DNA of 63,845 nucleotides, the filler included, from Intoshia linei (taxonomy: Eukaryota > Animalia > Orthonectida): the NCBI GenBank assembly GCA_001642005.1. It is 5 parts of 5 records of this genome, joined end to end, with 100 filler letters (N's around TTAATTAATTAA, not from the genome) between each part and the next. Parts side by side here need not be neighbours in the genome. Positions count along the whole stretch, not along the records: positions 1 to 30,932 come from LWCA01000366.1; 4 more parts are not named here. One strand, given 5' to 3'. Below the pieces are notes generated by a model. It was not told where the DNA came from. It was given only the letters and a program-made list of their open reading frames with translations, and made no database searches. The position numbers and the translations under genes are program-made. Shown piece after piece: positions 3,089-30,285 of the stretch (positions are counted from its first letter, which is position 1; every line of letters begins with the position of its first letter).

Positions 3089-3790
3089 AAATTAAATGGT
3101 ACAAACAAAACGGTTTGGTCTTGAAAATTTTAAATTATTTAATATTACAAACAGTAGGTCAAAAGTGGTAATGTTTATGATTTTTCTTTTTTCAATAATT
3201 ATTATTATAATACCAAAAAAGTTAAATTTGTCGCACTATCATATTTATTTGAGAAACTACATGTACTGTAGTACTTGAATGTGGTGAAAATTTTTAGCAT
3301 CTGATGTTAACGTGGGTGATTGAATTCAAGTGATAAGACTACATATTTTTTATTTGAAATAAAACCTTAAAAATTAATGAAAAAAAAACTTTAATTTTTT
3401 GAAAACGGTATGTCACTTAATAATTCTTTTAAAATTCATATTATTTTGGAATAACATATTTATTTTATTCTATTTCAAAAAAATGACTAACTTGATAAAA
3501 TTATAATTTATTAGAAATAACTTAAATTACTTAATGTAATTATCATTAACTTTTTTAAAATAAAAGTATATGAATATTGTTGAGTAGTTTATATAGGGGT
3601 TATTAGGAAAATTGGTAATACATTATAGTGCAGTAATGGTCTCGTATATAACATTATACTAGTAGCTACGTTAAATCGATTATAAATAAACAATTATAAC
3701 ATTAAAACATTATAAATAAACGTTTAATCTGAATATTAGATCAAATAAAAATTTCATTTAAAACTAGGGTTGATAATAAATATAATATAC

Positions 3791-5957
3791 ATGAACTTTT
3801 CAAAACAGATTGATGGATCATACGGCATATTAATAGTAATTGCTGCTTACATTTTTTATTTTATAGTTGATTCTTGGACATATACATCACCTTTAATATT
3901 TGATTTAATTCAAAAAAAACACAATAATGATTCTTCGTCGATCAATTTGTTTGTGACATTGATATTTTCTATACCTTGCTTCACAGGCTTAATTGTGTGC
4001 CATTTGATTGTCAAAATTGGATATACTCGTTGTGGTATTTTGGGAACACTAATATTTACGATACCATTATTATTCTATCATCAAATTGTCAGTTGGTCGA
4101 TAGTACTGGTAGTGATTAGTGGAATTTCGAGCGTTGGATTGGGATTTTTTTATTTTGTACCTTACTTGAATGTAATGCACTTTTTCAATAGGCACCGAGG
4201 TGTAGCATTAGGATTTACTACACTTGGTTCAGCAATGGGTGGAGCCATATTTCCGTATTTTTTTAATATTTTGCACTTGAATTATCCCAACAGTTACATG
4301 TACATTTTGGGAACTTTTATTTTGATTCTTCTTTTTATTTGTTCTTTTGTTTTTAAAGAACCTGAAAATCATGATATTGAAAAAATAGAACCAGTTGAAT
4401 TAACAAAGAGTTTAGAAAACAATCAACAAAAAAATTGTAAATCTATGGAAAATTTAATTAAATTCAGTTCTGAAAGCGTTCACAATAAAATAAAGAATAA
4501 TTTAAACACTATTCCAAAAAAAGTACGTAAAAATTGGAAACACATCTGTATTAACATATTACATGTACACCTGTTTGAAAATGTAAATTTTGATATTTTC
4601 TTGACGTTTACGTTTATTGCATGTTTATTTTTAACAAACTGTTTTGTTTATATTGGACAACACGTTGAAAGTGTTTTGAATAAACACGAAGTCACAAGTG
4701 AAACAGAATGGAAGGTTTCATTTGTTTTAACGGTCATGTCTACTGGTAGAGGTTTCGGACAATTAACTATGGGGGTTTTGATGGATCATTCCAATTATTC
4801 TCCTTTTAATCTATTAGGCAGCTGTTTCGTTATGATATGTAATATTTTATTTTATATTACTTGTGGCATAATTTTTTCATAAATTATAAAAATTTCTCTG
4901 CCATTTAATATAAACCGAGGAAAGTAGAAATCCTAGATAAATTTGTCATTTTTAACTTTTTTATTAACAGGTTTACTTGCATTAAAAACAGATGCGGCTA
5001 GTACAATTAACACATAGTTTACGAAAATAGATGAAATTCATTTTTACCAATTTTGGAATATTTTTTAGGTTTCAATATTACATAAATAAAATATAGAATT
5101 TTTTAAAGATTACATTTCAAATACAGTTTTTTTCGGGACGTATATTAAGATATATTTGAACCTTCCAATTTCATATCTTCAGGGTCAAAAACCCCTATTG
5201 TCCCTCTTTTTGAAAATGAAACGAGTTGGAGAATTTAAAAAATTATATACGCTGATGCGGATTTTAAAATTATAAACATTATCATAAATTTAAATTTAAA
5301 AAAATTATATCTTCAATCGTGTCATATCGTGAATTTATTTTTTTGGCATAATAAAAGAGTGCCCTCGGCAGAGCTAGGTGCTGTTTGTACATAGTACAAA
5401 ACTGCCAAGCTAGTGTTTATATATAGTTCTATTAGACGGGATCACGTGCTCCCTGGAACCTACAACACGACGCCACAGATTTAGACTAAATCTATATTTG
5501 TGTGAGACCAAATAAAAAATTAAAAGTATAATTTTAGCATTGATTCAATATTTGATCGCATTTATGGAAAATTACATTTTGTTGTTGATATTATATGGAG
5601 CATTTTCAGCGTTCTTTTCATCAATTGACATATTACCAGTTTTTTGTCTAAATAAAATGGTTGCAGAAAAACATATAAATGTTTCTTTTTCGTTTATGAT
5701 TTTATCTGCTGGTATATCCACGATAATTGGAGGCCAAATATCTTGTAATTTACAATTTATATTTTGATTTAGTATTTATATTAATACTAAAACTAGATGT
5801 TATATATAAAAAGTATCAACAATATATGATGATTTATGTTGTATCTGCTACGATATCATTGATATCATCATTTATGCTAATAATTCTTGGATACAAAGTT
5901 AAAAACGAAGCAAATTATGTCAAATCGAAAAATGAAAATGAAATTAACGTCCTTTGA
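3791..5957 (+). CDS. MFS monocarboxylate transporter-like (SLC16 family), copy 2; exons 3791-4838, 5538-5744, 5797-5957
   Basis: N-terminal DGSYGILIVIAA (DGGWGW-like) and FNRHRGVALGFTTLGSAMGG. GT-AG introns keep the frame, and the last intron is at the same position as in copy 1. Confidence 0.88.
5040..5413 (+). mobile_element. Non-autonomous Helitron-like family copy (in the MCT copy 2 intron)
   Basis: 3' hairpin TTTGTAC-ATA-GTACAAA then CTAG|T at 5410-5414. The internal sequence is shared with about 10 other copies in the window. The start is approximate. Confidence 0.7.
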
Positions 5958-6153
5958 AATGTAAAAGTAAACACCATTTAGATGCAACATAAAAAAATTT
6001 ATTATTTGTATATCTTTTGCGAAATATATTTTAAATTTTGAGATATAATTAAATAGAGAAACTTCATTTATGTATACATGTATGTAACGTTGTCCAAATA
6101 TAAAATATATTTAATGGGATAATGACTTATTAACCATAAAAATATTTTTCCAG

Positions 6154-6410
6154 TATTTTTCTACACAATTGCTTTGTTTATGTTGGTCAACATGTTGATT
6201 ATGTATTACATGAATATACTTATATCGTGAATACTTCCAGCAAAATTTTTCTGGTAATATCCACCATGTCAATTGGAAGAAAATTGGGACAAGTTATTTT
6301 AGGATTTGTCGTTGATTACTCCAAACCATCTTATTTCGTTTTGTATGCATCTTGTTATGTAGCTATAAGTACTTTATTATATATAAATCAGGGCATCTCA
6401 AAAGTGTTTA
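6154..6410 (+). pseudogene. Isolated fragment of a third SLC16-like paralog
   Basis: FLHNCFVYVGQHVDYVL...STMSIGRKLGQVILGFVVDYSK aligns to copy 2 FLTNCFVYIGQHVESVL...TVMSTGRGFGQLTMGVLMDHSN. It follows a TTTTTCCAG acceptor. Confidence 0.7.
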
Positions 6411-7409
6411 CCATGTTCCATTTTATATTTTTATATGATTACTCAATTTTATAAAAATATAAAAAATGATAATTTGGTAATGTTACATTCCACAGAATAA
6501 AAAAATAGAATATATTTTAAATTGAATAATTACCAGAACTTTAATTCTTTAAATAATAGCTATTTGAATTCCCACACTTGAAAACTTATAAACTGTTTCT
6601 TAAGATATAAATGTAAAGTACTTTTATTAATTTGGGGGCCTTTTTTAATAGTATAGTCCATATTGCCTATGCCTTAAAACGGCTTTGCCTAATTTATGGC
6701 ATATTTTAGTATTACTGACTTTTAAGTTAATGTTTTTAATATCTTTATGAATACTTTTTTATTGTGATAAAATGGTAACAAGGAATAACAGCAGTGGTGA
6801 CTCTCCAATTTGAGCTACTCAGACTGAGTTAGTGATTGTGATTTCCCGGGAAAAATAAAAAAATTTTATTCATATATAATATAGAAGCATTAAAATTTTT
6901 AGAGACTTTAATTAATTTTAGAAACAAAAAGAAATTTAATTAGAAAAAAATTTATTTATTTTAGATTGTTGAAAAAGTGTTTCAAAACACACATAATATT
7001 GATAGATTCGTCTTTTAAACGCGAACTTAGAAGCAGTAGAGAAATTTATTGCATTTTGTGTGAACGTAGGTTGAACGATCATAAGGCTTCCTTTAATTTT
7101 AACAATCTTGATGATGGCGTTCCAGTTCGTAACAACTTATAATATTGGAAAAAGGATATTTTTCCAATAAGGGCTGGAAAATTAGATTTTTATTTGTGGT
7201 TTGATGAAACGGATTTTTTTCATAGTATTTCGTAAAATCGGATTTTTGAAAAGAATATCGGTGTAAGACAATTTTTCCATGAGGGCTTGAAATGGTATTT
7301 TTGATTAAATTTTATTAGTGGTGGGATTTTTGAAATGGTAAATTTTAAATATTATAATATAATTATATTTTCATAGTAATAACAAACATAAATCAAATAC
7401 AGGTATGTN

Positions 7410-7989
7410 AACAGTTCGAACTGATCAAAAATTAGAGTTAAAACTTTTGTCAAAATTCAATAAATTACTAAATTATTAAAATATGCTGTTATAATTTGTA
7501 TTATTTATTTGTCTTTATCCTTGTGAGGTTATCCCACAGTGGCTTTTAGTACTACTCTTCTCTACTCTCCGTTAAAGATGAATATAGGTCTACCAGGGTA
7601 AAAAAGTATTATATCTCTTTTCTCTCTAGAGGTCATTATTTATCTCTATCTAAATACAAATTGTAATAGCATATTTTACATTTAAATATCTGTGTATATA
7701 TGTAAAAATGTTCATGTGTATGTAATATGTGTATGTATGTGTATATAATGTATATATATGTGTATGTATGTGTAAATAATGTATATGTATATAAATGTAT
7801 ATAAGTATAAAAACAAACAATAATAAAGTTCTTTTGTCATGCTTTTAAAAAAGGTTTATAAAAATTGGCGATAGAAATTACCAAACTAGATAAAATTTAA
7901 TCGGTAATTGTGTTCTAAATTACATTTCGAATGCTCAGTAAAATATACTTTTGTTAATTCAACCGAAAGTTTAAAAAAGGGACACCCTA
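7410..7989 (+). mobile_element. hATm-like element right end (duplicates 941-1277)
   Basis: Identical to 941-1277 after a single N. Ends in TIR AAAAAAGGGACACCCTA. Confidence 0.6.
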
Positions 7990-8037: not shown

Positions 8038-9495
8038 ATAGCTTGACTGTTATGTTGTTCATACAAATAGCAGTTAGCCCGACCCAGGGCGAAAAATAAA
8101 CCAATAAAATAAATTAAATAAAATGTTACTTAAAAATTCTATTAGCTATTAATAATCCTTCAAAGGTATGGTTCTGAACTTGTTTTAACATGGACCGGCT
8201 TATTATTTTTAAAAAATATCCGAGAATTTAGGTTTCATAAAATTTTAGGACATTTTTCATATTTATAATAAAGGGTAATTTGTGATTTTGATTATGAAGG
8301 TGTGCGTTTCTGAGGCTGAGATTGACGACGATGTTAATGATTTTTAAACACATCCCAGAAGTTATATTTTTTTAAATTTTTGGGATGCTTATATTTTAAA
8401 AAAAAATGCAACTTGGGTTTTTCACCGTAAAGGACTCAATTTTGGAAAATAAAACTCAGATAATAAACATCAATAAGATAAACATCACATGCGAAAATAT
8501 TTATTATTAATTGGTTATTATGTATCTAGTCTAATAATAGTTCGTTGTTGTAGATTGAAAAATTGCAAAGGAATCAATTATATAGATTTTCACCCATATT
8601 TTTTTATTGAAAATGTGTATGTAATGTGAAGAGGATATTTAGAGTTGTCAATATTTGTGAAGTAAATATCTTATATGGTTTTGGAATACACAGCACTACC
8701 AAAGCACACTTGGAATAGTATTGTTACTAGGTGACAACGCTACAGTGTAGACGTTAAATGCACATTTTTTTGAAATTGTAGGATCAATATTTACATTTTC
8801 AATTTTTATTTTACGTTAATCGAAATATTGGAAAAATATTGGTTGATAATACATTATGTATAATACATAATATATATTAAAAATTATTTTTCACCGGGAA
8901 TGCATAGTTTTACTGGGTTCAAATTTTATATTTTATATCAACTGGAGTAAGCTCTATATTCTCTTGTTTTTTAATTTTGGGACCGATAATTATTTGAAAT
9001 TTTTTGTTTTAATAAAATATTTCGTAAAAAAATGTATATGAATACTAAGTGCTTTTTTGACCATGAAGGCGTCACTTATTTAGATTGAAATTATTTGTGT
9101 CTGTTAACAGGATAAAACTGTACCACCGCTAAATTTTTTTTAAATTCTAGGGTTATTTTCATTAAAAAAAGGGTAATTTGTGGTTTTGACCATGAAGATA
9201 TATTTTTTTTAAATTTAAATTTATGACAATATTTATGATTTTAAAATCCGTATCAGAGTATATACTTTGTTAAATTCTCGAACTAGTTTGATTTTCAAAC
9301 AATAGGACAATTGGATTTTTGACCCGTAAGATGTAAGTTTGAAAGGTTGAAATTTATTTTACTAACACACTTATAAAAACTGTAATTGAAATGTGGCTTT
9401 ATAAAATTCTAAGATTGGTAGTTATTAAAATAAACGATAACACACACAGATAAACAAAGCATATTATATACAAAGTAATCATATGTAAATAAGGA
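8038..9495 (-). mobile_element. Near full-length non-autonomous Helitron-like copy
   Basis: The minus strand begins A|TCCTTA near 9495 with a nearby (TG)n tract. A degenerate 3' end near 8038-8090 matches the other copies. Confidence 0.65.
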
Positions 9496-10332: not shown

Positions 10333-11240
10333 ATGCAATACAAACCCACATACTTATCCCACCTTGATGCAGACTACTTTGATCAACCTCAAAAGATAAA
10401 AAAGCATAACTGCTCCAAAGATTCAGGTTTACTTGAATTTATATATCAGTTTTATAATAAATTAGCATTCAAATCAATTTCACCCTTCGGAACGGAATCC
10501 AGCCTTTCTTCAGATAATTCAACCAAAATTATTCCAGTTATCAAAAAAAAGACTTTTACAGATTTTTCCATAATGAAAATACTAAAGCATTCTGAACGAT
10601 GTCAAAATACAACAATTTCTCATAAAATTAACACAAAGACGTAATAATTAATTTAAAATTATTATACGTTTATTATAATAATGTATAATAATAATAATTA
10701 TTAATTTATTTATTTAATTTCTAGAATATCTAATAAAATGGAGTTGTGTTGTCACATATGTACAAAGATGTTTAAATCACGCGCAACGTTACGTAATCAT
10801 ATGCCAGTACATACAGGATTAAGAGCATTTAAATGCATCATTTGTGACAAATCATTTAAACAAGCCAGTACATTGAGTAGACACAAGATTATACACACCG
10901 AACTGAAACCATACAATTGTAAACAATGCAGCAGCAGTTTCAATAGGAAATCCACTTTATATATGCACATGAAAATTCACACTGGAATAAAAGATATAAC
11001 ATGTACATTTTGCGGAAAGGGTAATCGAATTATAATTAATAATAATACTAATAATAACCAATAATTGTTAAATAATTCATTAAATGATATTTAGAATTTA
11101 ATCAAAGAGGTAATTTTCACAGTCATTATCTAACACATGTCGGAAATAGAAAATTTTTATGCTCTTTTTGCGGAAAAAATTTTTTAACAAAACACTCTCT
11201 TAAATACCACCAAACGAGACATTGTAAAAACACTAAATAA
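10333..11240 (+). CDS. FEZF: Fez family C2H2 zinc-finger transcription factor (FEZF/earmuff ortholog); exons 10333-10640, 10725-11020, 11095-11240
   Basis: Diagnostic fingers HMPVHTG, FKQASTLSRHKIIHT, FNRKSTL and FCGKEFNQRGNF, plus an eh1-like motif FSIMKIL. GT-AG introns of 84 and 74 nt. Confidence 0.88.
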
Positions 11241-11419: not shown

Positions 11420-11940
11420 TAATTTTGGGACTGTTAATTATTTCAAATTTTTTGTTTTAATAAAATATTTTGGAAAAAAAATATGTGAATACTAAGTGCT
11501 TTTTTGACCGTTAATGCGTCACTTATTCAGATTGAAATTATTTGTGTCTGTTAACAGGATACAACTGTACGACTTGTAATTTTTTTTCAATTCTAGGGTT
11601 ATTTTCATTAAAAAATGAAGGGTAATTTGGGGTTTTGGCCCTGAATATATATTTTTTTAAATTTAAATTTATGATAATGTTTATGATTTTAAAATCCGTA
11701 TCAGAGTATATATTATTTTAAATTCTCCAACTCGTTTGATTTTCAAAAAAAAACAAATTGGGGTTTTTGACCCGTAAGATGTGAGTTTGGGAGGTTGAAA
11801 TTTAGTTTGCGAATATCCCCGGAAAAAATGTAATTGAAATGTCGACTTTATAAAATTCTAAAACGGGTAGTTATTTAAATAAAGTGGGACACAAAAACAC
11901 ACAAAAACGAAAATAGCTCAGCATATTATATAAGTAAGGA
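11420..11940 (-). mobile_element. Helitron-like family copy (5' part)
   Basis: Ends on the + strand in TATATAAGTAAGGA|T, which is the 5' TC terminus on the minus strand. High identity to 8975-9470. Confidence 0.65.
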
Positions 11941-13599: not shown

Positions 13600-14094
13600 A
13601 TTATGACTTTTAGTGTATTTATTTGAAAGTTACATAATCGACTGTCTTTTACTAATCACAAAATAAAGGCTTCCATATCAAAATTAGTAATTTAATAACT
13701 TTTTCTAAATAATATTTAAAATATAGTTTTTATATAGAATATAAAAAAATTTAAATTTATAGTCGACAAGTAAATCGTATATTTTAATTATTTTGAAAAA
13801 TTAATTGAAAACGTTAGCCTCGGTAAAACTAGCTGATGTGAAAAAATTACAAGCCAGTGGTTTATATTTTAAACTAAATAAACATTCTGGATTGCAGGAG
13901 ATTTGCTACCGACGGATGGTTTGCGTATACTGACCCTGCTTTAGACACACAAAGTATTAATTTATTTACATTGTTATATTATATATGTTCATAACTTTGT
14001 TGCACAACAACTAATTATATAATTATTGACATTCTACGAAATATTTACATACTACAGATTACAATATTTCTGAATATTTTAAAATTATACCAAA

Positions 14095-17000
14095 ATGAAA
14101 ATTTTTATATCTATCTTGATCGTTTTTGTCATTTTGTGCTTAAATTTTGAAACAACTCAAGGTATTTTTAAAAATTGTCAATTTTGCCAATCAGATTGGT
14201 TTTTTAATCAATGCATATCATAATCAATATTGCAGAAATAATTAAATTATTAATATTGCAACTATACAATTTCACTATCAATATGATAATAATTACAACC
14301 GATATGATAATAACGTGTTAATAATTCAATGTGATAACATTTTGCAAGACAATAAAATAATCACAAGCAATGTGATAATAGCAATTATCAATGTGATCAT
14401 TGCTATATTCAAATTGATAATCAAATTATTAAGGGTTTCTGGTATATTTTGACCAACAATTAAATTGTAGTTAACGGGAAACGTAATATGGTTGTAATGA
14501 CACTACCTATAATATATTTTTTTATGTTTAAGGTGTATATTTAAGAAAAATATTCGAATTTTTTGAGTTTAAATTGTTAAAAATATCAGTGTTATTTGCA
14601 GGTTTATTTAACCATAATAGCTTCGAAACAAAAATATAAATTATTTTTGAAAATTTTTATATTTACTTTCAAATTAAGAATAGTCACAGTCAATGTAAAA
14701 ATAGCTATTATCAATGCAAGAATAATTACATTCAAAATGAGTGAAAAAATTTCAACTAAATTCAAAGTGAGAATTTATTACTATACATGTAACAATCATT
14801 AAATTGATTTATTGGGTAGAGTTTATAAATTCCATATGACGTGATATTTTTCACATTTTAATTATTTTATTTAGCATGTAATTTTCATTTAATTATTAAA
14901 TAATTACATAATTAATTAATTTAATATAACGTTTAAATAATATATGTTTGTATTTATATATATTGTATAGAATGTGTAAAACTGTGAAATGTACACATTC
15001 TATGGGTTAGTTGTAGAATGTGTAAAACGTTCATTTATATTTTAGTATAATTTTGGGTTTTAGAAAATTTTGTAAACCAAATTTTAAGGCGTTTTTAAAG
15101 TTTTTTTTGAACCAAACTTTGAAGAGAGGTTTTTAAGATTTTTTTTTAAACCAAACTTTAAGGGGGGTTTTTAGGAAATTTTTAGAACCAAACTTTGAAG
15201 AGGGTATTTTAGAATTTTTTTTGAACCAAACTTTGAAAAGGGGTTTTTAAGATTTTTTTTGTGAACCAAAATTTCAAGGGGGGGTTTTACGAAATTTTTT
15301 TTGACGATTTTGATTTGAGATAGGTTCACATAAAGTTTCTAAAACCCAAAATTAAACTAAAATGTAAATGAAAGTTTTACACATTCTAGGCAACATATAC
15401 AAACACTCATAAATAGACGAATTTCCATTAAATAAAGTTATATTGCAGTTTTGGATAACATCCTTGTATAGAAATATATTTTTAGAAATTTAAAAAGCCA
15501 CAACATATTTTAATCTACTGTAAATAGAAACTTTTTTGAATTACAATTTTTTAATAGTAGTTGTAATGAAGTATCAAGAATGCAAGAGTTATTAGCTCTA
15601 ATTCAGTGTTTCCCAACCGTGGGGTAAGGGCCCACTGGTGGGACATTGGAAATTTGATGGGGCCTACGACTTTTTGGTGGGGTCTGGGAAATATCACAAA
15701 TGTATATGATTATGAAACTTTAGATTAATTTATTGTTAATTTTATACAATATTATCAGGTTTATAAGTGGTTATGTGATACTTGAACCAATTAATTGTAT
15801 TATTAAATTATTAGAATGACAAAAAACAAATGAATCTTTAATGATCGTGGGCTATTGAATTCAAATTTAACTAAATGGATGAGTATATGCAAAATTATCC
15901 GACTTTGATTACTTTGGTTAAGATTGCCATTTCCATCCTCTTATTTAGCAGAATGCGGGTTTAGTGCAGTTTTAGACTTACTGACAAAAAAATAAATAGA
16001 CTACAAATTTCAAAAAGGGGAGATCTATGATTAAAGCTTACAACATTAGTACCTAATATTAATAAACTTTGTCAGAATCGTCAGGCTCAATCGTCTTATT
16101 AATTTTAAAAAATAAATACATTATTATTGTTTTTATTATTATTTTATTATAATTCGCTCGAATTTTTTTTTCAGTGGGGCCTGGGATTTTTTTAAAAGTA
16201 AAAATGGGGCCTAGCATAAAAAAGGTTGGGAAACACTGCTATAGTTGTTTACTTGAAGAGTTTAACAAAAATGTTGTTAATGTTTAATTAATACAATGAA
16301 GTTCTTATTTATCCAATACATCATCGTGGTAGCTGCACGATGATGTAACAGTAGTACCCGTCTTTTTCATCTTTTTCCACGATACAATATAAAAATAAGA
16401 AACGGCATAATTAAATATTTAATGCTAAGTTATAGTTAATAAGCATATTTTAAAAATATTAAAATTTTCTATTGGATACTTTTTATTTAAAATTTAAAAT
16501 TTATTTTAGCTCAAGGACCCTGTAATTATATTGACAATAGAATATCATAAATCTATGATAAATATATATATGATTAATAAATATATATTGATGAATTTTA
16601 GATGGTTATTATTAGAATATATTAATTATTCAGGTCCTACACCATTTAATTAATATGTAAATATGAAAATGTTTTATTTAGGAAGTAATTATTATTATTA
16701 ATTTTAAAATCATAAATTAAAAGTATTTGCAAGCATATTTACATTGATGGTAATAAACCAAAGTAGTTTATAGAAATATTTTCTATTATCTTCTTTTAAA
16801 TAGTGGATGAAAATGCTAAAACTTATTTTTTGTACTCACTTTTTCTAAAAGTAATTAATTTTTATTGCACTAAAATAGAATTTATGACTATTTTTTGGAA
16901 CCTACCAAATGTGAACAATGAATACAGTAGTAATACCTAGTGTAGTTTACAATATTTTAATTATTAGTCTAATGGAAAAAAAATTTGAAAACTTTATAAC

Positions 17001-20000
17001 TTTCATCGATTTAAGTTCGTATGATAGCATTAAGTTTGTGTAATGTCATCAAGTATGCTCGAGTTTAAGCCATCAGTGTTTAATAAATGCAACGTTTTCA
17101 ATATACAGGAATACATTAACCAAATAAATTATTTTTTATAAAGGACGTAAATTTTTAAATTGCAAATAAATTGGTACATATATACAATGAATCATCATAC
17201 ATGTATGATGTATTTACATAAAATTAATGTTTCCAATATTATTATTTTGATAAACATTATTGTAAATTTATTGAAAATGACGAAATGTTAAAACCAAAAT
17301 AGCATGTCATCAATTTATATTATTTTAAAATCAAAAATAATAGATACATGGTCGTGTTTATAGTCTAATGCTAAGACTGAAATATCATTTTGTACTTACA
17401 TTTTATATATTCTGTAATTTTTAAAATGTCATTTTGTACGTACATTTTATATATCTTGTGATTTTTAGAATCTCACATAAGATAATTTGGTGTCTAGGGG
17501 TTAATGACGTGTTTTCAAAGTTTTTATGAAATTATTTTTATACAGCTTTCCATTGTACTTAATTATGTCAATATTAATTGGATAGATTCAAAAAAAATAT
17601 TTTACTCAAAACTATATAACAATTATGTTTGATAAATATCGTTTTTTGAGTGTTGTACTGTATAATTATAATCTACAGATATTGTACTTATTTATAGTTT
17701 ATTTCATCCATTATAATAATATTTTAATTGGAATATTTATTCAAACTAATTTATTTAGAAGGTAAAATACAATGAATTTACAAAAATATAATTTAACTTA
17801 AAAAATTCAACCAATGATGCATTATTAATTGACTATATATATTATCAATATTACAATTATAAACGTTTTCAGTAATAAGGTTATGTTTGCAATCAATAGC
17901 ATTTTATTATGGAAGTGTTAACATTTAACTATTGGCTGTAAATTTTTTTGAAATAAACATTAAAATTATAATGTTCATCATAGTAACCAGTCGAAATTCT
18001 TATGTTACTATTTTATTTAAAATAATTAATCTTTTATCAACCTATCAATATACAAAATGTACAACAATAATATCTTAAACCATCAATTAATTAAATGTAA
18101 TATGAATTAATATCATATAATCTTCATTTTAATTTAAAATTTAATATATAAATCAAATTTTTAATTGTGTTTGCGTTTCCAAGGCTTTACTATATTTTTA
18201 TAGATCGATAATTTAAAATATTTTTTTGTTACCAAGTAGATTTGTTTCTATTATTGATCTGATTCCGTTAATGGACTGAAATTTCGATGCCCCTTTTTAA
18301 GCCAATAGTGGATGCTTCACTGTACGTTTAAAGTACGTTTTTCGGTGTTGCGAAAAAAAATTAAATTTTCAATAAATTTTAAGTTTTATCATAAAACGTA
18401 CTTCTTTTGTAGGTCGCTTTAATTTAATCGATTTAATTTGAATCGGTATTCATTGGTTGGTAATGTATCTATTATAAAAGGTACAAAAATTTTATGACTG
18501 TTTTTAATAGGCCGTAATTTATTGTATCGAAAGACATTTCATTGCTTTTATTATGTAATATTTATATGAATAATATTAACAATGTAAATTAAAATATTTA
18601 ATTTTGTCTAGACGGTAAATATAAAATTTTAAATAATTACGTTTAACCCCCATATAGCGTACACAAAAATGTTTATTTTAGAACACGTTAAGCCTTACTT
18701 AAATTAATCTATATAAAGTTGAAATATATGGATATGTGAATAATATGTGATAATGTGATAAGAAATAATGTTATATATTGAAATATTGAAAGTTATGCGG
18801 ACCTAACGATAAGGAGTCCTTATCCTTATTAAGGAGCATGCATCATAATGTGCTTACATTATGGCCTCTACTACTTGATATTTTGAATACATTTAAATAT
18901 AAATTACCTGTTTTTACAATACATAAGTACTGGACTGGTATCATTAGATAAAATAGAAATTACAAGATATAGACTAACTATTTAATAAAAAGGTGGGTTT
19001 GGGTGATCCTCTTCTGCTTCTACCTTTGCTTGTCCCAAAACTGCAAACACAGGAACATGATATAGTAATCGTCAAATTGACCACTAAGTAGGTTCAATAT
19101 ATCAGTCAATTTATTAGTCATACATTAAACGTGTAATTACAACAAAATTTAGTATCCAACTCATATCGCACCGTATTTTCTGGATATTAATTAATATTAA
19201 CTTAATTAATCTAAGAAAAACCTTAAATTTAAATTTAATCTAAATTTAAGCAAACTGGGATGAATAAATCATACATAACCGTTGCTAATTATCAGATATG
19301 AGACCATTCCATCTAACACAATGATATTATCTTATATTCATAATCATTACATACAATCGTTACTTACATTTAATACATTTGGGTATATGTCTAGATTTAA
19401 TCACTCACTCATTCTCAGTGAACATTTGCGGAAGCGATTGAAATATACGCCACCAGTCTTATCTGTCATTATCCAGATCTTTGATGTATATCTTTACTGG
19501 TTTTTGATTGTGTTATATAGTTTTTATCTTTTAAAAATACAGTAGAGTATAGAGTACCTATAGTCCATCGAATTCTACAATTTTACAAAAAAATTAACAC
19601 CCTGCCCTACTCATATTAATATGTGTGTATATATAATATAATAATGTATTAATATAATATTGACAATTATTTTTTAATTTAATAAATTTTTAATTTTGGT
19701 ATTCTAGGATGTAATATCATAAAAAATAAATATTTTCACTCAATGCATGACAAGCATTTAAATTTATATTATATAATTTACACCGTAGCTTCTTTGTCTG
19801 TTGTCAGATGCTACCACATTTAATAATAAAAAATTTCCAAACCAAAACACAATTTATATTTAAGATTTATATTATTTACTTGCTAATATATAATATCTAA
19901 TAATAATATCTAGAAATAAAAAATGATTACTAAAAAAATATATAGTAAAATAAATAACCGTTTTCTACTTGAAATCTTACAAGGTTGTACAATATGCATA

Positions 20001-23000
20001 GATTTTACCACCACCCGACTGAGATTTTGAAACATTTTTTTGATTTAAAAAGACTATAATGGGCGTGGATTTCATATATATTTAATTTTAACAGTATACA
20101 CATGGGTGTTGTTTTTACCATTAATTTTTTAAAATACACATATATGTGTATTTTACTATCAATGGTTAAATAATCATATAATTAAGTTTTTCATATCTTC
20201 CAATATTTATCAATAAATTTACAGTATGTAATTTTAAATACTTACCGTATATAACATTATAATAAATATTAACGTTTTAAAATATAATATATTTAAATTA
20301 TATTAAATAGTAGGTAAAATTAAAGTTCGTAAATTTATTTAGATTATGTATTGACATTTTATTAGACCAGTACTAGAGCATAAACTACCTTACTCCGGAA
20401 CTTCTCTTGGGTGGTATAAATAAAATGTTAGTATAATTGGCCTCATTTCTATTTGGAAATTGATAATTAAAAAAATTTATATTTTTCAATATGCTAATTG
20501 TTGCGTCTCTAAATTAAATTTTCAAGTCCCGAACGTTGAGTGGTGGATAAGGGCTATGTAACATTACCGATGATTTGCTAAGATGTTCCTCGTAGTCTGT
20601 ATATGATTTATTGGTCGCTTTTAGTAGCTTTAGATCTTTATGGGTGACATTAAATTTAAAATAACAGCAGGGTTGCCAACTGCGTTATTTTCCCCCTGAG
20701 AATTCGGGTTTTCTAATTCAACTCAGGGCTCAGGGTTAAGTGATATTTCTCAGGTTAAGTTAATTATTTTAATTAAAATCATCAGATCAGACATATTTTA
20801 TTTATATTCTATAATTTTTTTCTCTAAAGTGGTTTCTGTTAAATATGAATACTGTATAATATAAATTTACGCTTATATGAATTTCATGAAAATAAAAGTT
20901 AGATTTGTATAGTATTTATTATGAAATAAAGTTTTTAATATGAATTTGTATTAATTTTCTATCACGTGACTTATAAATTTCAGAAAAGTAACCATTCAAT
21001 ATAAATTTGAATTTAAAGAAAAAAAGATTTTTCGATAAATGATAAAATAAAATTAATTAAACTGTTTGACGAATATTCAAATCGATCTTAAAAATATTTA
21101 GCCACCAAACACTCAATTTCAGTAGGTTTGATAAATAAGTCGTTAAAAAATCCTTAATTGTAATAATTTAAATTTGAATCAGATGAGACAACCTTGCCTA
21201 AGGAAATCTATGAAAATTGAATCAGTAGTTTCAATGTCAACGGACATTAAATATAAGTATAAGTATGAATATATTGAAAAAAATGACGGTGGAAGATGCC
21301 AGTCTTTTGAATTTGAACGATTTTAAGCATCTACTGGTTGTTAATTCTTTTTTAACCAGAGATTCCATTAAATCAAAAAAAAATTGTAGGAAAATCAAAA
21401 TTAGTAAGTGAGTCTAAAAGAAAAGAATGGAAAAAATTATTTTCTGAAACTGTAGAAAAAAATAGAAATGATAACATTTAACTGTGATAAAACCAGATCT
21501 TATAAAAGAAAGATCTTTAAAAAGAAAAAATTGAAAATAGCAACAAAATTATCAACTATTTTCTATTGCAAAAATACATACTTATACATTTGTGTTAATA
21601 TTCACTTGATTCGTAATTCATATTTATATTGTACAACCAACTCTATAATGAATATTCTAAATATCCGGTCCCTTGACATTCATATTGTACAGAAACCACT
21701 GTATTCATTTTGAAATTTGCAATAAAAATTGTGTGTAAACTTTTATTATTTTTTGAAAAAGACACCCAAAGTAAAAGAGGGCCACAAAAAATTTTCACGC
21801 TTCAGCCATGCTTGGCTCAAAACTCAGGGTTAAAAATAATTAATGTTGGCAACCCTGAATAACAGTCGATTACATTGAAAGTGTTTATATCTCACAGAAA
21901 TAACAGGTTTTAAATTATTATAACAAATCATAACATTAAAGGAGGTAAACGTTTCTATTATACAACTTAACTTGAAATATATTTTGGAACATACAAACTA
22001 TTAAAGCATATATATTTTTTATATCTTGTGTTTACTCAGCATGTAAGATTTTAACCTTATTTTATTTCCTAATCAATTAATATTTGTATAATTATTAATG
22101 TAAATTATTTAGTCAGTAAACTAATGAAAATTGTATAATTAATTGATGAGATCCAGGGTCCTCACCCTCGTGGCCGCTGTCATATTTTATTTTTATTATC
22201 AAATGTATTGTAATGCAATGCACATTGTATATTATAAATTATTTTTTATTCAAGTTTAAAATCCACATTTATCTACATCTAAATTTACATCATAAAGTAC
22301 TTTCAAATCACTAGAATATGTCGATAAAACAATGAAATTTTATTATACTGAATGTATAAAACTATCAATATAATAATATAAATGGATAGTAACTAAAAAT
22401 TATGAAATGTGTCTATCCGTCAAAAAGGTGGGATCCCTGGATTAGATATAAAAACAATATTTATAAATGTATAGCCATTTTCACATATATGTTAAAATTA
22501 ATAAACAATTTTATGGTTGTAAATGCTATTATAATTTAAAATTCTAGAATGTAACTTTATTTAAAATGTTCATCATTAATAATTATATGTATTTGTACAT
22601 TACACAAATAAAAAAAATAAATGTAGTTGTTAATTTAAACCACATTTTTTAGTTTGAGGCAGTTTTAAATGGAATAAATTATAAACTTTTTTATAAAATG
22701 CTATTTCTTTAACTTTAATATTTCATATTTAATATTATAAACATAATACAAATTTTGATTCATAATTTTTAATACTAAATTATATATATAGAGATGTATA
22801 GATTATATCTCTTAAAATATAATGTGGTTGAGATGATAGTCTGATTCACTTGACAAAAAAAAAATAACTTCACGTGAAAAACATGCTTCATTCTAATATA
22901 CATTTTAATATAATTATTATATAATGATTATTGGAAAAACATTATTATGAGAACGATACGGGATGACAACTGTGGAATAGAATAGAATCAACGCAATATT

Positions 23001-26000
23001 AGATGACATCAATAATAGGAATTTCTAATATGTGATGTTTATTAAATAATTATCAAACAATGTTTAATAATTATTAAACATTAAAAAATATAGTCCAAAG
23101 TCAAGTATAAGACCAAAAAATCAAAATTTCACAAATTAATGAGAAAATTACGCTAATTCAAATTATAATTAGTATTTTATAACGTCATAATCGTACAAAA
23201 AATCCAAAAAGTTAGAATTACTATCTTTAAATACAAAAAGTAAAATATTAAGAATAATTAGTGCAGAAAGAGTCATTTTTAAAAAATTTAAAGTACTACC
23301 AAGTAATGTGGTAATTTTGATATTTCTGTAAATCAATGCTTTAAACCAACTAATGTAAACAATAAGTTAAGTTAGAGTCTAACTGTTAGACAAAGGTATG
23401 TTGTATAGAGTTCTACTGTATTTATGAAAAAGTCAAGTGCATTTCATTCATGGACATTGTCCATTGGACAATGTTTTCAGAAATTACAGTGGAATATTTT
23501 TTATTTCTAGTAAATTTTCGTAATTTGTTAATCTGATTTTCAATTTGTTACTACAATATTTTTCCTAACGTTACGGTTTAAATAAACGACTACACTATTG
23601 TAAATTTGATATTTCGGATAACGTACATATTAAAAAATTTTTCTAATTATTTTAAACGTGTAGCAAGTATTATCATAAAATTATGTAAAGTAATTAGCAA
23701 ATAGTGTTACATTTTAATCAAAGAAGCGTTGTCAGATGTCGGGATTTTATCCCAAAGCCTAGACGACCGCTATATTATTATTTCAAAAATCCCACTTTTA
23801 TCCTGGCATTTATAAAATTTAATAAAATAAAATAATATTAAATAAAAAATGCAATCAAACCCTTAGGAAAAAATCTCCGTTTTGCAATATTTTTTTAAAA
23901 AATCCGATTTTACCAAACATTATGAGAAAAGTGCATTTAATCTAACCTTAATATAAAAACTCCATTTTACCAACCCTTAAAAGAAAAATTCGATTTTACC
24001 CACCCAAAAAAAGGGAAAAACCCCATTTTTCCAAATCTGAGAAAAATTTCTTATTCCAATTCTTTATTAAAAATTCAATTTACCAACCCAAAAAAGGGGA
24101 AAAAACCCCATTTTTCCAAAAATATTTTTAAAAATTAGATTTTACCAATCCTTAAGTGATAAATCTTATTCCGACCCAAAATAAAAATAAAATTTTACCA
24201 ATCCTTACCTCTTTAGTGAACAATGCTCTTTTATACATATTTATTAGAAAAATCTAATTTTATCAAACCCTTGCAGTGTTGCCGAACATACCGTGCCGTG
24301 TCTCTTTCGGGTAGAGCGTATATAAATTTTTCTAAAATGAGTGTCTCATTTTTCAAAATTGAACATTAAAAAAGTTATATTCTTAAATATCATAATGTGT
24401 TTAAATTTAAAATGCTAAGTCATGAGAACAACATTAACTCAATTTAGTGAATCTCTCTTTTGTTAAAAATTCCAAAAAAATGTGTTGGTAACGGTTATCA
24501 GTGCACTGCTTTGGCTGGATCAATGTTGATGTATGGAGCGCAGTAGCGGAACTAGGTGGGTACAGGGGGCTTACACCCCCTGGTGCGACAAATGTGATCC
24601 TAAAATATTTTAATTTGTGTATTAACATTATGAAAAATTAAAAAATATTCTAGGATCCATCATCCTACTTTTTATGTATATGATGATCATTAATCTATGT
24701 ATTATTTTTTATGCTACAATCATAGTAACATTAAATAATTTAAATTAAGTCAAATTATCGGACTTAAAGTTGTTTATAATCAAAAGAGAACTTGCCGAAA
24801 ATGTCAATTTTGATGCAGTTAACAACTCAACAGTTGAAGGTTCAATAGTGAAAAATTTAATAGAATGAAAACTAAAAAAAATATAAATTATTATAATATA
24901 TAGAAATATTAAATAAAAATTCTAATTTAAATACATTATATGCGTTTGACCCCTAATAGTTATATCGTTCTTCTCTGTCTGAAAAGCTTAGATCCGCCAC
25001 TAATGGATCCTACTGCCTGCAACGCTGTTATGCCTTTGTTTAATCTTTCCATCAATTGATTATTATCAAATATGACTATTTTATTATTATACATTATTGT
25101 GTACTGTAATTTTAAAACATTACTAATTATTTTATTATAGTTAGTAAAATGCCAATTTAAAGTTAAAATAGTATATATACATGATATATATAATATATAC
25201 AGTAGGGTGTCCACTTTTAACACTTTTGGTTGAATTAGAAAAATTATATTTTACTGAAAATTGGAAATGTAATTTAAAACATAAATATACAAGACAACAC
25301 TCCAAAGTCTGTAATTTATTCCACCTGAAAATTTTTAAACCTTTTTAAAAAACTAACTTTATTTAAATTAATGAATTAAAATTATTTAATTTAGAAGACA
25401 GTTTTAACTCCAATTTTTCATTTGTTCTAATTGTTGATCTTATAATTTCCATTTGGACAAGAGCTCGTTCCGATATTTTGTTGGTATAAATTACCTTCAT
25501 GGGTTTTAACTTTACATTCCAATGTCGTTTTAGACATTGACTTGCGGTAACATATTTTTTTCATTTAAATAGTTCGAAAGTTCATCCCAATCGGCAACTT
25601 CGGAATATCTAATATTAGTTTTATGATAATTTTTGATATATAAAATAATATTAATAATTACCTACAATTGCATAAGCATTTTACTTAATATTAACAAATA
25701 AAATCACATGCCTCGACCATCTTAGCGTCTCTTATTCCTAAGAGATATGCTTTAATAGCGTAAATTGCCTTTGTGTTCCATCTTGCATTGGATATAGGTC
25801 CTGGATATTTGAATAATATTTTTGGATTTTTTTTCAGATCGTTTAGTTAAGTAAGCATTGGTGAGATTATATAACTTGAAATAATCATTTCTCTATATAC
25901 CTTCAATATTAATGATATTTTTAATGTTTGTTGTTTCAACATAGTTATCTTTAAGGTTTTCAAAATTTGTTTGAACAAATGCAACAAATAGGAAGTTTAT

Positions 26001-27702
26001 ATTTGGACCTTCTGTATCATTTTAAATATACATTTAAGAGTATATTTGATAATTAGACCCAAAACGTGAAAGCGGCAGCTTGATATGACTATAACCACTC
26101 TACCAGTTCAACATCACAAGTGAGTTATATCAAAAGTATATATTCGAATTTCGATTAGTACAATAGTTATATATTACAACAATACTAATAAAGAGTAATA
26201 CATTATTAACATTATAGCACATTAAGATTTAGATTAATAATATATTATTATTAATAATAAATAGTGTAATAAAGTATAGTTCACATTTTTGAAAATAAAA
26301 ATATCATAAATGTTTTTAATTTCAGGCGGAATTAATTTCAATTAAATGAATTAATTTTCACATATTCGTGATTAGTGCATAAAAACACACATATATGCAA
26401 ATATACTTTTCGATCTTTAAAAAAGTAAACACCCTAATATACAGATATATGTTTAATATACAATTTGTGATGCCCATTATGCCTCAATAATTAGGGATCA
26501 CATTATTTTCAAAATTCTTTTTTTAGTATAACATATATGTTATTTTAGTTGGTATCAATTAAATTAATATGTCAAAATAACTTTTCTATAATTAAAAAAT
26601 TTATACAAAAATACATTAGGAAGTAAAGATTAATTAAAAAATTCTTAAAATTAATATATGGTCCAATTAATGGACATATATATTTTGATAATAAATAATG
26701 TAATATTTAAAATTCATAGAAAGTAATTTAATATATTCTTAAAGCTTTTATTGTAAATAGTATCTAAATATTTGATGTTAACCTTATTGACTAATAGCTG
26801 GTAACTTGATCATTACGATAATTATTAATACGTTTATTATTAAAAATAATATTGATATTTTAATATTTATAGGACGTATACATTTATAATTAAAAAATTG
26901 AATTAATATTAACACGTATATAAGTATATGTATATAATGCATAATATACATCTATATATTTTTATGTATGATAATGATATGATATATTAGATTGTAATTT
27001 ATTTTTCAGATTTTTTTACTACTTATAAACTTACTTATATTATTTATAATATTATAATATAATTATATTGTAGCTGGAAGTAAAACTTTTTAGATTTGAT
27101 ATCAATTATGAGCCGATCTGTCTTTATTTATTCAATTTTTAAAATGTTATTTTAATTGTATTGTTAGGTTCGGAATGTAAATTATATACTTTACATATTA
27201 AATATTTTAGTTATTAATATCATTAATATTTCTTTTGTAATTTTACTATGTTTTATTAATTTTTAATAAATTTTGATATTTAGACTAGACCAAAGTTTAC
27301 TTATTTATGCTAAAAAATTTTATTAATAAATATATTATTATTAGAGTTACGTACATTTGTTTCTATTTTTTATTAAGGTTGTCAATTGATATAACATTAT
27401 ACGAGCGATAATATGCATATATTCATATAGATATAGATATATATAGGATATAAATATATATATGTTACAGGCAATTTGAAAATTGCCTGGTTTGCGAAAT
27501 TGCACGGGTAACGGCCCTGCACCCGACCTATATCCACTACTGGTCTGAACATTTTGTCGTGCACTGTAAATAAATAAAAAGTTAGTTAGAATTACACAAC
27601 GTTTGTCAATATTTACAGTTTCATAAACATTTTTTTCATTTCTTAATACTACCAATAGGCATATTCAATTTTATAGGTGATAATTATAAATGTATATTTT
27701 AG
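14095..27702 (+). CDS. Predicted micro-exon gene encoding a ~75-aa secreted peptide (signal exon, ~31 micro-exons of 3-12 nt, terminal exon)
   Basis: Exon 1 14095-14161 = MKIFISILIVFVILCLNFETTQ+G|gtatt. It is followed by a run of AG|3n|GT units on the same strand and a terminal exon 27677-27702 ending TAG. The concatenation is an open frame (see findings). Confidence 0.72.
14945..15404. mobile_element. Foldback-like MITE with long imperfect TIRs and ~7 internal ~31-bp tandem repeats
   Basis: TAGAATGTGTAAAAC...TTTTGGGTTTTAGAAA is inverted as TTTCTAAAACCCAAAA...GTTTTACACATTCTA. The core unit TTTTTGAACCAAACTTTGAAGAGAGGTTTTTAAG repeats at 15075-15300. Confidence 0.7.
15604..16238 (+). mobile_element. 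Buster/Charlie-type hAT, non-autonomous
   Basis: TIR CAGTGTTTCCCAACC / GGTTGGGAAACACTG, TSD CTCTAATT/CTATAGTT (6/8). Remnant FPSSYLAECGFSAVLDLLTK...PNINKLCQNRQAQSS. Confidence 0.85.
18900..19545 (+). mobile_element. Possible decayed non-LTR retroelement fragment
   Basis: Locally higher GC and a broken GGFG..PLLLLPLLVPKLQ reading that resembles the post-RT GGLG motif. Weak support. Confidence 0.25.
20668..21857. mobile_element. hAT-type non-autonomous DNA transposon (CAGGGTTGCCAAC family)
   Basis: TIR CAGGGTTGCCAAC / GTTGGCAACCCTG and perfect 8-bp TSD AATAACAG. A short sister copy lies at 43042-43386. Confidence 0.9.
22154..22439. mobile_element. Small hAT-like MITE
   Basis: CAGGGTCCTCACC ... 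GGTGGGATCCCTG, flanked by GATGAGAT/GATTAGAT with a one-base offset. Confidence 0.5.
23850..24270. repeat. Degenerate ~30-bp tandem repeat (TTTTACCAACCCTTA core)
   Basis: Recurrent ATTTTACCAACCC/TTTTCCAAA units. Similar arrays at ~7150-7340 (reverse) and ~42520-42630. Confidence 0.6.
24541..25002 (+). mobile_element. hAT (Tip100/Blackjack-like) deletion derivative
   Basis: CAGTAGCGGAACT / AGATCCGCCACTA, TSD ATGGAGCG/ATGGATCC (6/8). Remnant LSDLKLFIIKRELAENVNFDAV. Confidence 0.65.
25203..26436 (-). mobile_element. hATm-like DNA transposon with decayed transposase
   Basis: TIR TAGGGTGTCCACTTTT / AAAAGTAAACACCCTA and perfect 8-bp TSD ATATACAG. Minus-strand remnant ...TNKISERALVQMEI... Confidence 0.88.
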
Positions 27703-28829
27703 TTATATATTTCTACAAACTGTTGTTGTTGTATGAAATGTGTAAAAATATCTTGATGCCCCAAATATAAAAATACTCATTGGTAAAATAGTACTTTTAA
27801 GATAATTTATTTCCATTTTTTTCTAATTTCCAATTTTTTTAACCATATGCATTGATGGAAGCTATGATATCATGCCTACGTGTTGTATGTTAAATTTTTG
27901 AGGATCTATCGCGCATACTCGTGCACTGGATAATATCAATAAATTATGATATCGCAAAAGTCTGTGCGATATATAATATCGATGAATTTGAAATCATAAA
28001 AGCCTGTGGTGACTAAATCTCATTTCGAAATAACGAATATTCCTCAATAAGTTAACATTTAAAATTTGTTAGCATTTCTATATTTTCCAGCTACTATATA
28101 TAAATTATATAACACATATATGGATAATAATCTCTACATTTGTACAAAAAATTTTTTTAGTATATGGAACATACATTTTTATATGTTTAATATGTCTCAT
28201 TGAGAAATGGTCAAAAATTGAATAACCTATTGAAACTATGACGCATTTATTTATGAAATTAGTTTTTAGACTTTGAAATTACACGATTCACATAGCAGTA
28301 CCAGAAAAGGCTCCACAGAGCAGTTCTATAACAAAGACTATAATAACATAAATGTCAAAGTGTATTTGAATCAAACATTATTTTGTTTCTTTTTTTTACA
28401 TAAAATTTAACAAAAGCTAATAATTAAAAAAGGTAAAAATCAAAAATTTATTATGTTGAAATAAAAATAAACTAGCTACAGATAAAAAAACAAATAAAAA
28501 GGTGGTATAATTATTCAAATTGAATATTTGACACACATACGCGCTTTTTATTATGCATTTATTATGTAAACGCTATAAACCTTCATATACAAATATTTAT
28601 TTTACAAGTTTAAACAACACATTGCATCATAGTAATTTGAACATGTTTAGCATAGAGCTACTAAATCACCTAACTAAACTTGCGGCCCGCCACGTATTCT
28701 AGTTTGACATGCTGATTGGTTTTCACCACTTCTTTCAATACTATCATAGGGTTCCACAGCGAAAAAGGGTTGATAATGTCTGTTTACATGGTAAAATGCA
28801 TCAAAAAAATGAAATTCAAAAAAAATTTT

Positions 28830-29705: not shown

Positions 29706-29907
29706 TTTATATAAAATCGCATACATCAAAATAAATTCAACCTGTATAAATAGTGCAATATTACGTATGAATTTATCAACGCTAACATTTAATAATTTTT
29801 AAAAAAATTGACACGATATTTACATTTATATTTGTTTATAAACCATTGTTTACTTTAAAATAATATTCATTTTAGAAATTTGTAGTTAACTGTTGTAACA
29901 CTTGAAA

Positions 29908-30285
29908 ATGATCAAATTTTTATTCTATAGTCTTATTGTCATTAATATATATGGTCAAGTTAGATGCCAATGTAATATTATGAAGTTGTATAATAAAAAT
30001 GAATGTATAGTGTGTTTACCAGACTTATCAATAGCCAGTTGTCAGATGACAGTTATAACATTTACGACACTTAGTATATATGTTGTAATATATATTGTAA
30101 TATTCAACGTATATTATATTTATGACATACTATATTTCCCAGTTAAATGCAACGTGAAATTTGATATCGAAAAGGATACCGTTTGGATAGGTTTTGAGAT
30201 GTTGAACGGGAAAAATTACACAATTATTCAAAATGAAGATTTCAAAAATGCAAAAATGATGATTATGTCAAAATCAATGACATAA
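29908..30285 (+). CDS. Small secreted Cys-containing orphan protein (probable in-frame intron 30074-30142)
   Basis: Signal-like MIKFLFYSLIVINIYGQVRC followed by several Cys. Removing the 69-nt GT-AG segment leaves ...TTLIKCNVKFDIEKDTVWIGFEM... Confidence 0.5.
   Translation: MIKFLFYSLIVINIYGQVRCQCNIMKLYNKNECIVCLPDLSIASCQMTVITFTTLSIYVVIYIVIFNVYYIYDILYFPVKCNVKFDIEKDTVWIGFEMLNGKNYTIIQNEDFKNAKMMIMSKSMT

Follow-up and report, generated by a model that had tools for sequence, protein, structure and literature searches.

Can a gene be built for the most part of exons no longer than a single codon? The question is raised by positions 14095-27702 on the plus strand of a stretch of DNA from the orthonectid Intoshia linei, which we refer to as the window and which comprises 63,845 nt in five joined parts of the genome assembly. 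A first-pass annotation of this interval had proposed a hidden gene in which an exon encoding a signal peptide is followed by 31 very small exons and a terminal exon, jointly encoding a secreted peptide. The locus lies on contig C2339 in an assembly of 41.6 Mb (3520 contigs, 25% GC), and the piece that contains it is 75% A+T. The results of our analysis support, at the level of prediction, a translated micro-exon gene in which most exons are 3 nt long, because flanked triplets are enriched on one strand and at one spacing only, stop codons are depleted in phase 1 when the triplets are joined, and a collinear paralogue is found elsewhere in the genome, none of which is tied to the choice of exons. 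With a probability of roughly 85%, we consider the interval to be one protein-coding gene of about 32 exons, about 30 of which would be symmetric micro-exons in phase 1.

Enrichment of flanked triplets on one strand

The motif count consists of recording, on either strand, all occurrences of YAG-N(k)-GTA with k = 0-15 and comparing them with 100 shuffled sequences that preserve the dinucleotide composition. The pattern with k=3, which defines a strict unit at this locus (YAG-NNN-GTA), occurs 21 times on the plus strand of positions 14095-27702 compared to 3.8±2.1 times in the shuffles (z ~8) and three times on the minus strand; in 16 of the 21 units the downstream flank reads GTAA. The 19 such exons against 4-5 expected that had been estimated by hand were thus about right. 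All other spacings (k = 0-2 and 4-15) remain at the background level within the interval. Of the earlier expectation that spacings of 3, 6 and 9 would exceed the shuffles on the coding strand, the part concerning k=3 on the plus strand held, whereas k=6 and k=9 lie at background in the locus. The enrichment is counted without any choice of exons, and the observation is therefore independent of the first-pass exon list. No extended similarity was found among the flanks of the 21 sites, which therefore do not constitute a repeat family. We conclude that the motif signal is genuine and lies well outside what chance would produce.

The regions before and after the interval are at background, apart from an upstream excess at k=9 (11 compared to 3.8). 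We considered this excess as a candidate for a second micro-exon gene and rejected it, as it is largely due to internal duplication: the same flanks surround the k=9 sites at 1071/7540, 1128/7597 and 9111/11558. The duplicated segments of the window, with identical flanks, are 1071-1225 and 7540-7694 in one case and 9084-9120 and 11531-11567 in the other.

Arrays of YAG-NNN-GTA units were found on at least 30 contigs of the assembly. Three such units 55-125 nt apart occur 175 times genome-wide compared to 45 times for a reversed control and are clustered on particular contigs, and the stricter form of the triple, with TAG and GTAA as flanks, occurs 61 times compared to 3 for the control, on about 28 contigs including that of the window. 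Twenty stretches with arrays were fetched, 140 kb of which are covered by the pooled counts in sense and antisense orientation. Each 10 kb of these stretches contains 13-43 units with k=3 on one strand, compared to about 3 at other spacings or on the opposite strand. In the pooled sequence, YAG-N3-GTAA is found 302 times in sense and 7 times in antisense orientation, while the corresponding counts are 24 and 14 for YAG-N6-GTAA and 17 and 10 for YAG-N9-GTAA. Units with a weaker acceptor (AAG-N3-GTA) number 70 in sense and 22 in antisense, those with a weaker donor (YAG-N3-GTT) number 49 and 31, and directly juxtaposed AG and GT (k=0) are found 12 times in either orientation. Counts of single units in the complete genome show no excess at k=3 (9065, compared to 8817 at k=4 and 9034 at k=6); they are uninformative because the class occupies too small a fraction of the genome. 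The class amounts to tens of loci, and its design is not common to all genes. The scan for similar loci, by revealing a gene class on at least 30 contigs rather than a single oddity, justifies the earlier description of the locus as part of a system resembling the micro-exon genes (MEGs) of schistosomes.

If the units are exons, joining them should produce a readable frame, and this can be assessed without selecting exons. Every strict unit of each locus was joined in genomic order, and the order of the units was shuffled within each locus as a control (n=2000), which leaves the units and the splice-site composition unchanged. When the units themselves are read as codons, 35 of 439 are stops, and the next frame has 39 stops in 419 codons. 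In phase 1, where the last base of one unit is read with the first two bases of the next, there are only 15 stops in 419 codons, compared to 30.3±4.0 after shuffling, and none of the 2000 shuffles gave a number as low. The strict units of the window locus contribute no phase-1 stops over 20 junctions. The depletion depends on adjacency, and neighbouring units are therefore read together; splice-site composition alone is insufficient to explain it. The share of units expected to be chance hits, about 15%, together with the units with weak splice sites that are missing from the set, accounts for the remaining phase-1 stops.

No convincing long open reading frames (ORFs) were found on the sense strand of the fetched array loci, and the arrays are consequently not obviously linkers inside conventional genes with large exons. 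Of the arrays seen, that at C1697:1-20000 on the plus strand (fetched as L014 and L015) is the densest, with 77 strict units of 3 nt in 20 kb, and its first 10 kb provide 42 stop-free codons in phase 1; it represents a single micro-exon gene of great length or else a tandem cluster. Micro-exon segments duplicated in tandem, with six units in common and an identity of about 70% over 1 kb, were observed on the minus strand of C261 (L018/L019) and on C207 (L024). These segments adjoin cysteine-rich ORFs on the sense strand with furin/EGF-like CxxC patterns, and some of the 3-nt exon arrays may be parts of genes with conventional exons as well. In the C261 duplicates, 52 of 60 positions in the unit cores are identical compared to 66% in the introns, a difference that arises partly from requiring AG and GT in both copies and lends only weak support to the model.

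Predicted gene and its paralogue

All 33 exon coordinates of the first-pass annotation are correct in that AG lies directly upstream and GT directly downstream of each unit, and the joined chain of 228 nt translates to the 75-aa ORF that had been proposed. This ORF is not in itself evidence for a gene because exons that create stops had been dropped by hand. An independent view of the chain is offered by the paralogous locus on contig C1428, the coordinates of which are labelled L016 below. Its 64-nt leader exon (L016 2871-2934) is hydrophobic, ends in phase 1 and has the core I-L-I-x-F-x-x-L-C in common with exon 1 of the window. It is followed by a 12-nt exon, a run of 3-nt exons, the exon TAGGAA and more 3-nt exons, and, in the 3' part, by exons of 6 and 9 nt and a terminal exon ending Cys-x-x-Phe-stop. 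The proteins predicted from the two loci are collinear from the leader to the C-terminus, with 31 of 56 residues identical (55%) and a local alignment score of 108 compared to 25±5 for shuffled sequences (z 15.6).

The correspondence is closest near the 3' end, where the consecutive units CTG, GAC, ATT, CAGGGA and GTTCAGAAT of C1428 face CTG, GAC, ATT, CTGGAA and GTTCGGAAT of the window (26798-27176), with exon sizes of 3, 3, 3, 6 and 9 nt in both. All three base differences in this 24-nt block, which encodes TGHSGSSE, are at codon position 3 and are synonymous. The exact pair of CTG and GAC with their splice flanks is found in the whole genome only at these two loci. The introns of the two loci are unalignable, and a DNA search with positions 26450-27950 of the window at E<=10 matched only short repeats and failed to find the C1428 paralogue. 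Micro-exons conserved amid unalignable introns and differing only at synonymous positions bear the signature of purifying selection on the predicted peptide.

The window exons TAG (20311) and GAG (21942), with a 1.6-kb intron between them, correspond to the single 6-nt exon TAGGAA of the paralogue (L016 6564-6569), and intron gain or loss at a spacing of one codon has therefore taken place after the duplication. In the same way, runs of 3-nt exons in the paralogue match 9- and 6-nt exons of the window. A third member of the peptide family may be present at C7:10640-10648, where AAG-GTTCAGAAT-GTAA (C7:10637-10652, plus strand) contains the same 9-nt exon as C1428. Contigs C586 and C17, which have one mismatch to the pattern of the CTG and GAC pair, were considered as further relatives and rejected, as they encode no clearly related peptide.

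The first-pass exon model is essentially right in its chain, its phase and its agreement with the paralogue; the exception is exon 2 (14471-14482), which is probably spurious because it lies in a dispersed repeat, uses an acceptor private to this copy and has no counterpart in the paralogue. The repeat, about 230 nt long, occupies positions 14261-14494 in intron 1; it consists of internal sub-repeats resembling CAATGTGATAA and has more than 40 copies in the genome, on both strands, that are 73-97% identical. At the place of the exon 2 acceptor this copy reads GTAG, whereas five other copies read GTAA, and the TAG is thus private. When exon 2 is omitted, the last base of exon 1 and the exon CAT encode Ala, and the junction reads ..T-Q-A-S-Q-G-P-Y-G compared to ..V-E-A-S-G-V-Y-G in the paralogue. 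Both T-Q-A/S and V-E-A/S fit the -3/-1 rule, and a signal-peptidase site after ..T-Q-A, and likewise in the paralogue, is plausible. Exon 1 encodes Lys at position 2 followed by a hydrophobic run of about 15 residues, as judged by inspection. The predicted product is a pre-peptide of about 71 aa, from which cleavage after ..T-Q-A would probably release a mature peptide of about 49 aa that we infer to be rich in Gly, Tyr and Ser and to contain two Cys.

Without exon 2 the model comprises 30 internal exons, all of them 3-12 nt long and multiples of three, and 23 of them are 3-nt exons. They provide 123 of the 216 coding nucleotides, or 149 of 216 together with the 26-nt terminal exon. The three exons with an AAG acceptor had been named as the least certain, and the paralogue divides them: the exons at 17144 and 21942 have positional counterparts there, and the one at 19984 has none. 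The exon ATG at 16602 receives weak support from an ATG unit of the paralogue (L016 5636), which has a GTAA donor; the Y-G (Tyr-Gly) motif recurs in the paralogue chain, and the alignment pairs this unit with a later Gly of the window peptide. An AATAAA is located at 27939, about 240 nt 3' of the terminal exon. Table 1 lists the individual exons.

Table 1. Exons and exon candidates of the predicted gene in the window, with their counterparts at the paralogous locus L016
Feature	Position	Strand	Remarks
Exon 1, 67 nt	14095-14161	+	start codon and hydrophobic leader; 22 codons + 1 nt; phase 1; donor GTAT
Exon 2 of the first-pass annotation, 12 nt	14471-14482	+	doubtful; in dispersed repeat; no paralogue counterpart
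CAT, 3 nt	14875-14877	+	strict unit TAG-CAT-GTAA; with last base of exon 1 gives Ala conserved in paralogue
CTCAAGGACCCT, 12 nt	16510-16521	+	TTTTAG and GTAA flanks; 12-nt paralogue exon at equal place in chain, same GGA Gly codon, L016 2971-2982
ATG, 3 nt	16602-16604	+	weak GTT donor
GAA, 3 nt	16682-16684	+	strict TAG-NNN-GTAA unit
GAC, 3 nt	17144-17146	+	AAG acceptor; positional counterpart in paralogue chain
AAG, 3 nt	17759-17761	+	strict unit
GCC, 3 nt	18511-18513	+	strict unit
ACG, 3 nt	18612-18614	+	strict unit
GAT, 3 nt	19708-19710	+	strict unit
GTT, 3 nt, uncertain	19984-19986	+	AAG acceptor, GTAC donor; weak class; in gap of paralogue alignment
TAT, 3 nt	20225-20227	+	strict unit; part of L-L-G motif common to paralogue
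TAG, 3 nt	20311-20313	+	strict unit; no stop in phase 1; first half of paralogue TAGGAA exon
GAG, 3 nt	21942-21944	+	AAG acceptor; second half of paralogue TAGGAA exon
CAT, 3 nt	22040-22042	+	strict unit
TCA, 3 nt	22113-22115	+	strict unit
Alternative exon candidate, possible second start	22146-22209	+	ATG-initiated, hydrophobic, phase 1; sequence unique in genome
AAT, 3 nt	22548-22550	+	strict unit
ACAAAG, 6 nt	23390-23395	+	TAG and GTAT flanks; paralogue region only loosely alignable
TAAATTTTC, 9 nt	23511-23519	+	CTAG and GTAA flanks; 3-nt units instead in paralogue
CAA, 3 nt	23664-23666	+	strict unit; pairs with paralogue CCA
TTA, 3 nt	25141-25143	+	strict unit; pairs with paralogue TTT
TTG, 3 nt	26549-26551	+	strict unit; paralogue TTG identical
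GAA, 3 nt	26620-26622	+	strict unit
AAA, 3 nt	26720-26722	+	strict unit
CTG, 3 nt	26798-26800	+	identical paralogue unit, L016 8412
GAC, 3 nt	26873-26875	+	identical paralogue unit, L016 8460
ATT, 3 nt	26991-26993	+	identical paralogue unit, L016 9296
CTGGAA, 6 nt	27074-27079	+	6-nt paralogue exon CAGGGA, L016 9362; both differences synonymous in phase 1
GTTCGGAAT, 9 nt	27168-27176	+	9-nt paralogue exon GTTCAGAAT, L016 9438; single difference synonymous
ACCAAA, 6 nt, uncertain	27289-27294	+	GTT donor; no paralogue counterpart
AGTTAC, 6 nt, uncertain	27345-27350	+	no paralogue counterpart
Terminal coding exon, 26 nt	27677-27702	+	ends ..K-C-I-F-stop; paralogue terminal exon ends ..C-P-L-F-stop, L016 9588-9604

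The neighbourhood of the locus contains further features. Tandem ORFs of metazoan type resembling monocarboxylate transporters of the major facilitator superfamily (MFS), comprising several paralogous gene pieces, occupy positions 1687-6454 on the plus strand, and an apparently ordinary intron at about 1889-2111 has the ends gtaattta and ttttttag, the same splice consensus as the micro-exon units. On the same strand, an ORF of 108 aa with tandem C2H2 zinc fingers is located at 10738-11064, and an ORF of 127 aa with a hydrophobic N-terminus and several Cys is located at 29902-30285; the latter may be another gene for a secreted protein just downstream.

Proposed splicing of triplet exons and alternative readings

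The way in which such exons could be spliced is suggested by their flanks and spacing. In the pooled array loci, the stretch 10-30 nt before the acceptors shows an excess of TTAAY and a deficit of G, which looks like the context of a branch site and a 3' splice site, and successive units are most often 60-100 nt apart, with a median distance of 130 nt. We envisage that these mostly short introns would be recognised by intron definition and removed in order from 5' to 3'. Each 3-nt exon would first be joined to the growing upstream exon and would then offer NNN/GTAA as the next donor, in the manner of a recursive splice site from which three bases remain. Since all internal exons are in one phase and have lengths divisible by three, the frame would survive the skipping of any of them; that skipping yields variants of the peptide is a speculative idea, and a role at the host interface is likewise speculation.

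A number of observations weigh against this account. Chance would be expected to produce about 4 of the 21 strict units, and of the 41 loose 3-nt candidates in the interval 18 are unused in the model, 13 of which would also leave the frame open. A position weight matrix contributes hardly anything in addition to YAG and GTAA, and this scarcity of splice-signal information makes individual exons unverifiable from sequence, notably those of 6-12 nt and those with AAG acceptors or GTT donors. The exact exon list and the peptide are accordingly uncertain by a few residues. The C1428 chain was put together by us with one stop-making unit dropped. The ORF that reads through from exon 1 (14083-14220) matched no database protein, and no experimentally established precedent for the splicing of dozens of consecutive 3-nt exons was found in the literature. 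Moreover, the gene model, and with it the presence of the triplets in mRNA, is a prediction from sequence.

The most sceptical reading is that there is no gene at all and that AG...GT triplets can always be picked into an ORF in 75% A+T sequence, given that stop-making candidates were dropped in the first-pass annotation and that many subsets of the 41 loose candidates stay open. We give it virtually no credence and regard it as already refuted, as the enrichment (z ~8) was obtained without exon selection, on one strand and at one spacing, and recurs at 30 or more loci (302 compared to 7), and neither the depletion of phase-1 stops nor a paralogue with synonymous differences only can come from picking. 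A subtler possibility is that the YAG-NNN-GTAA arrays are real and untranslated, serving as ratchet points, as processing signals in long introns or non-coding RNAs, or as protein-binding motifs. The array design does resemble recursive splice sites, and the point made above concerning mRNA speaks for this reading too. Ratchet points, however, have zero spacing, which is not enriched in the arrays, and a donor of the form NNN/GTAA necessarily leaves three bases in the RNA. Untranslated units would also leave several regularities without a cause: neighbouring units avoid stops in exactly one phase, the peptide is kept in the paralogue with changes confined to third positions, alongside introns that have decayed, and in both paralogues the chain opens with ATG and a hydrophobic leader and closes with a stop. 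We therefore hold an untranslated role to be very improbable.

Other readings accept translation and differ in what the window locus encodes. There could be two genes or two promoters, with a second start at 22146-22209, in which case a single 75-aa product would not exist as such. The candidate exon there resembles a signal peptide and is in phase 1, and the paralogue has a similar candidate in the middle of its locus (L016 6671-6740), but the two are not homologous, collinearity between the paralogues extends over both halves of the chain, which in either paralogue starts from a homologous 5' leader exon, and an exon at 22146 would start only 30 nt past the unit at 22113. A second start is thus unlikely, and judged less likely than one gene. 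It is also conceivable that the gene class is real and the window copy is a decaying or silent paralogue, in line with the repeat insertion in intron 1 and with the expression of this copy being presumed. Decay would hardly leave a chain of strict units with 0 phase-1 stops over 20 junctions, a terminal block that differs from the paralogue at synonymous sites only, and a start, a stop and splice dinucleotides that are all intact, and we assign this reading a very small probability. In favour of one translated micro-exon gene, the comparisons presented above demonstrate the predicted architecture, the consistency of its strand and phase, and the apparent selection on the encoded peptide.

A broader interpretation extends from the window gene to the biology of the organism, and we rate its chances as slightly better than even. 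The spliceosome of I. linei would, routinely and accurately, splice chains in which dozens of 3-nt exons follow one another. It would do so in at least 30 genes that form a dedicated class and encode small secreted peptides, and the 190 kb sampled would account for more than 400 exons of this kind. The class would have arisen independently of the MEGs of flatworms, with active codon-by-codon fragmentation of the coding sequence and possibly combinatorial variation of peptides at the parasite-host interface. Active fragmentation is proposed because TAG and GAG, separated in the window, form one exon in the paralogue. If transcripts confirm this interpretation, codon-length pieces spliced dozens of times over would set a new lower limit for exon-intron architecture and for the spliceosome, and the arrays would make it possible to study, in a natural setting, the recognition of exons that are too short for exon definition. 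Micro-exon genes would also have originated a second time, independently and in a parasite that is not a flatworm, which would strengthen the idea that the design is adaptive for secreted peptides of parasites. Finally, a whole class of genes would be escaping current gene finders and RNA-seq aligners, and the secretomes of such genomes would consequently be under-annotated.

Comparison with known micro-exon systems

The literature search yielded no report of 3-nt exon arrays or of orthonectid micro-exon genes, although a mention in the I. linei genome paper is possible. The closest known system is that of the schistosome MEGs, which, according to PMC4350168 and PMC10526429, are characterized by a first exon encoding a signal peptide, very small symmetric exons and much longer introns, and encode small secreted peptides, with several families per parasite genome. 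The predicted window gene shares the tiny symmetric exons, which make up most of its coding region, and a frame that would be kept upon skipping; its first exon encodes a signal-like leader, and its small product may be secreted. There are likewise multiple families in one parasite genome, and neither ORF searches nor gene finders can see the genes. The systems differ in exon size and in host lineage. Exons of schistosome MEGs measure 6-81 bp and mostly 15 bp (PMC10526429), a range within which 23 of the 30 internal exons of the window gene, at 3 nt, do not fall; of the internal exons in the pooled array loci, more than 90% have a length of exactly 3 nt, and phase 1 is common to all. The claim that the locus is more extreme than schistosome MEGs is borne out by this comparison. 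MEGs have been described as restricted to platyhelminths (PMC4350168), whereas the genome with the arrays is that of an orthonectid, and the likeness is one of gene design as read here from the genome.

The second system to be compared is recursive splicing, with which the arrays have a possible mechanism in common: it is plausible that a 3-nt unit becomes the donor for the next step after the first splicing. Ratchet points occur in long introns of Drosophila and vertebrates, where a 3' splice site is followed directly by a 5' splice site; the exon has zero length and leaves no trace in the mRNA. The arrays contain no such zero-length exons as a class, in that their spacing is strictly 3 nt, k=0 is unenriched (12 compared to 12) and the triplets are read as coding.

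Isolated 3-nt micro-exons in otherwise ordinary genes have been described for Drosophila homothorax (PMC7392893) and human MAP4K5 (PMC8632122). A single unit of an array resembles them in having canonical splice flanks and in adding one codon's worth of sequence, whereas the arrays have 12 to more than 40 such exons in succession that make up most of the coding sequence. As predicted from these features, the gene class is a new and extreme variant of the micro-exon gene design, beyond any micro-exon gene found in the literature searched.

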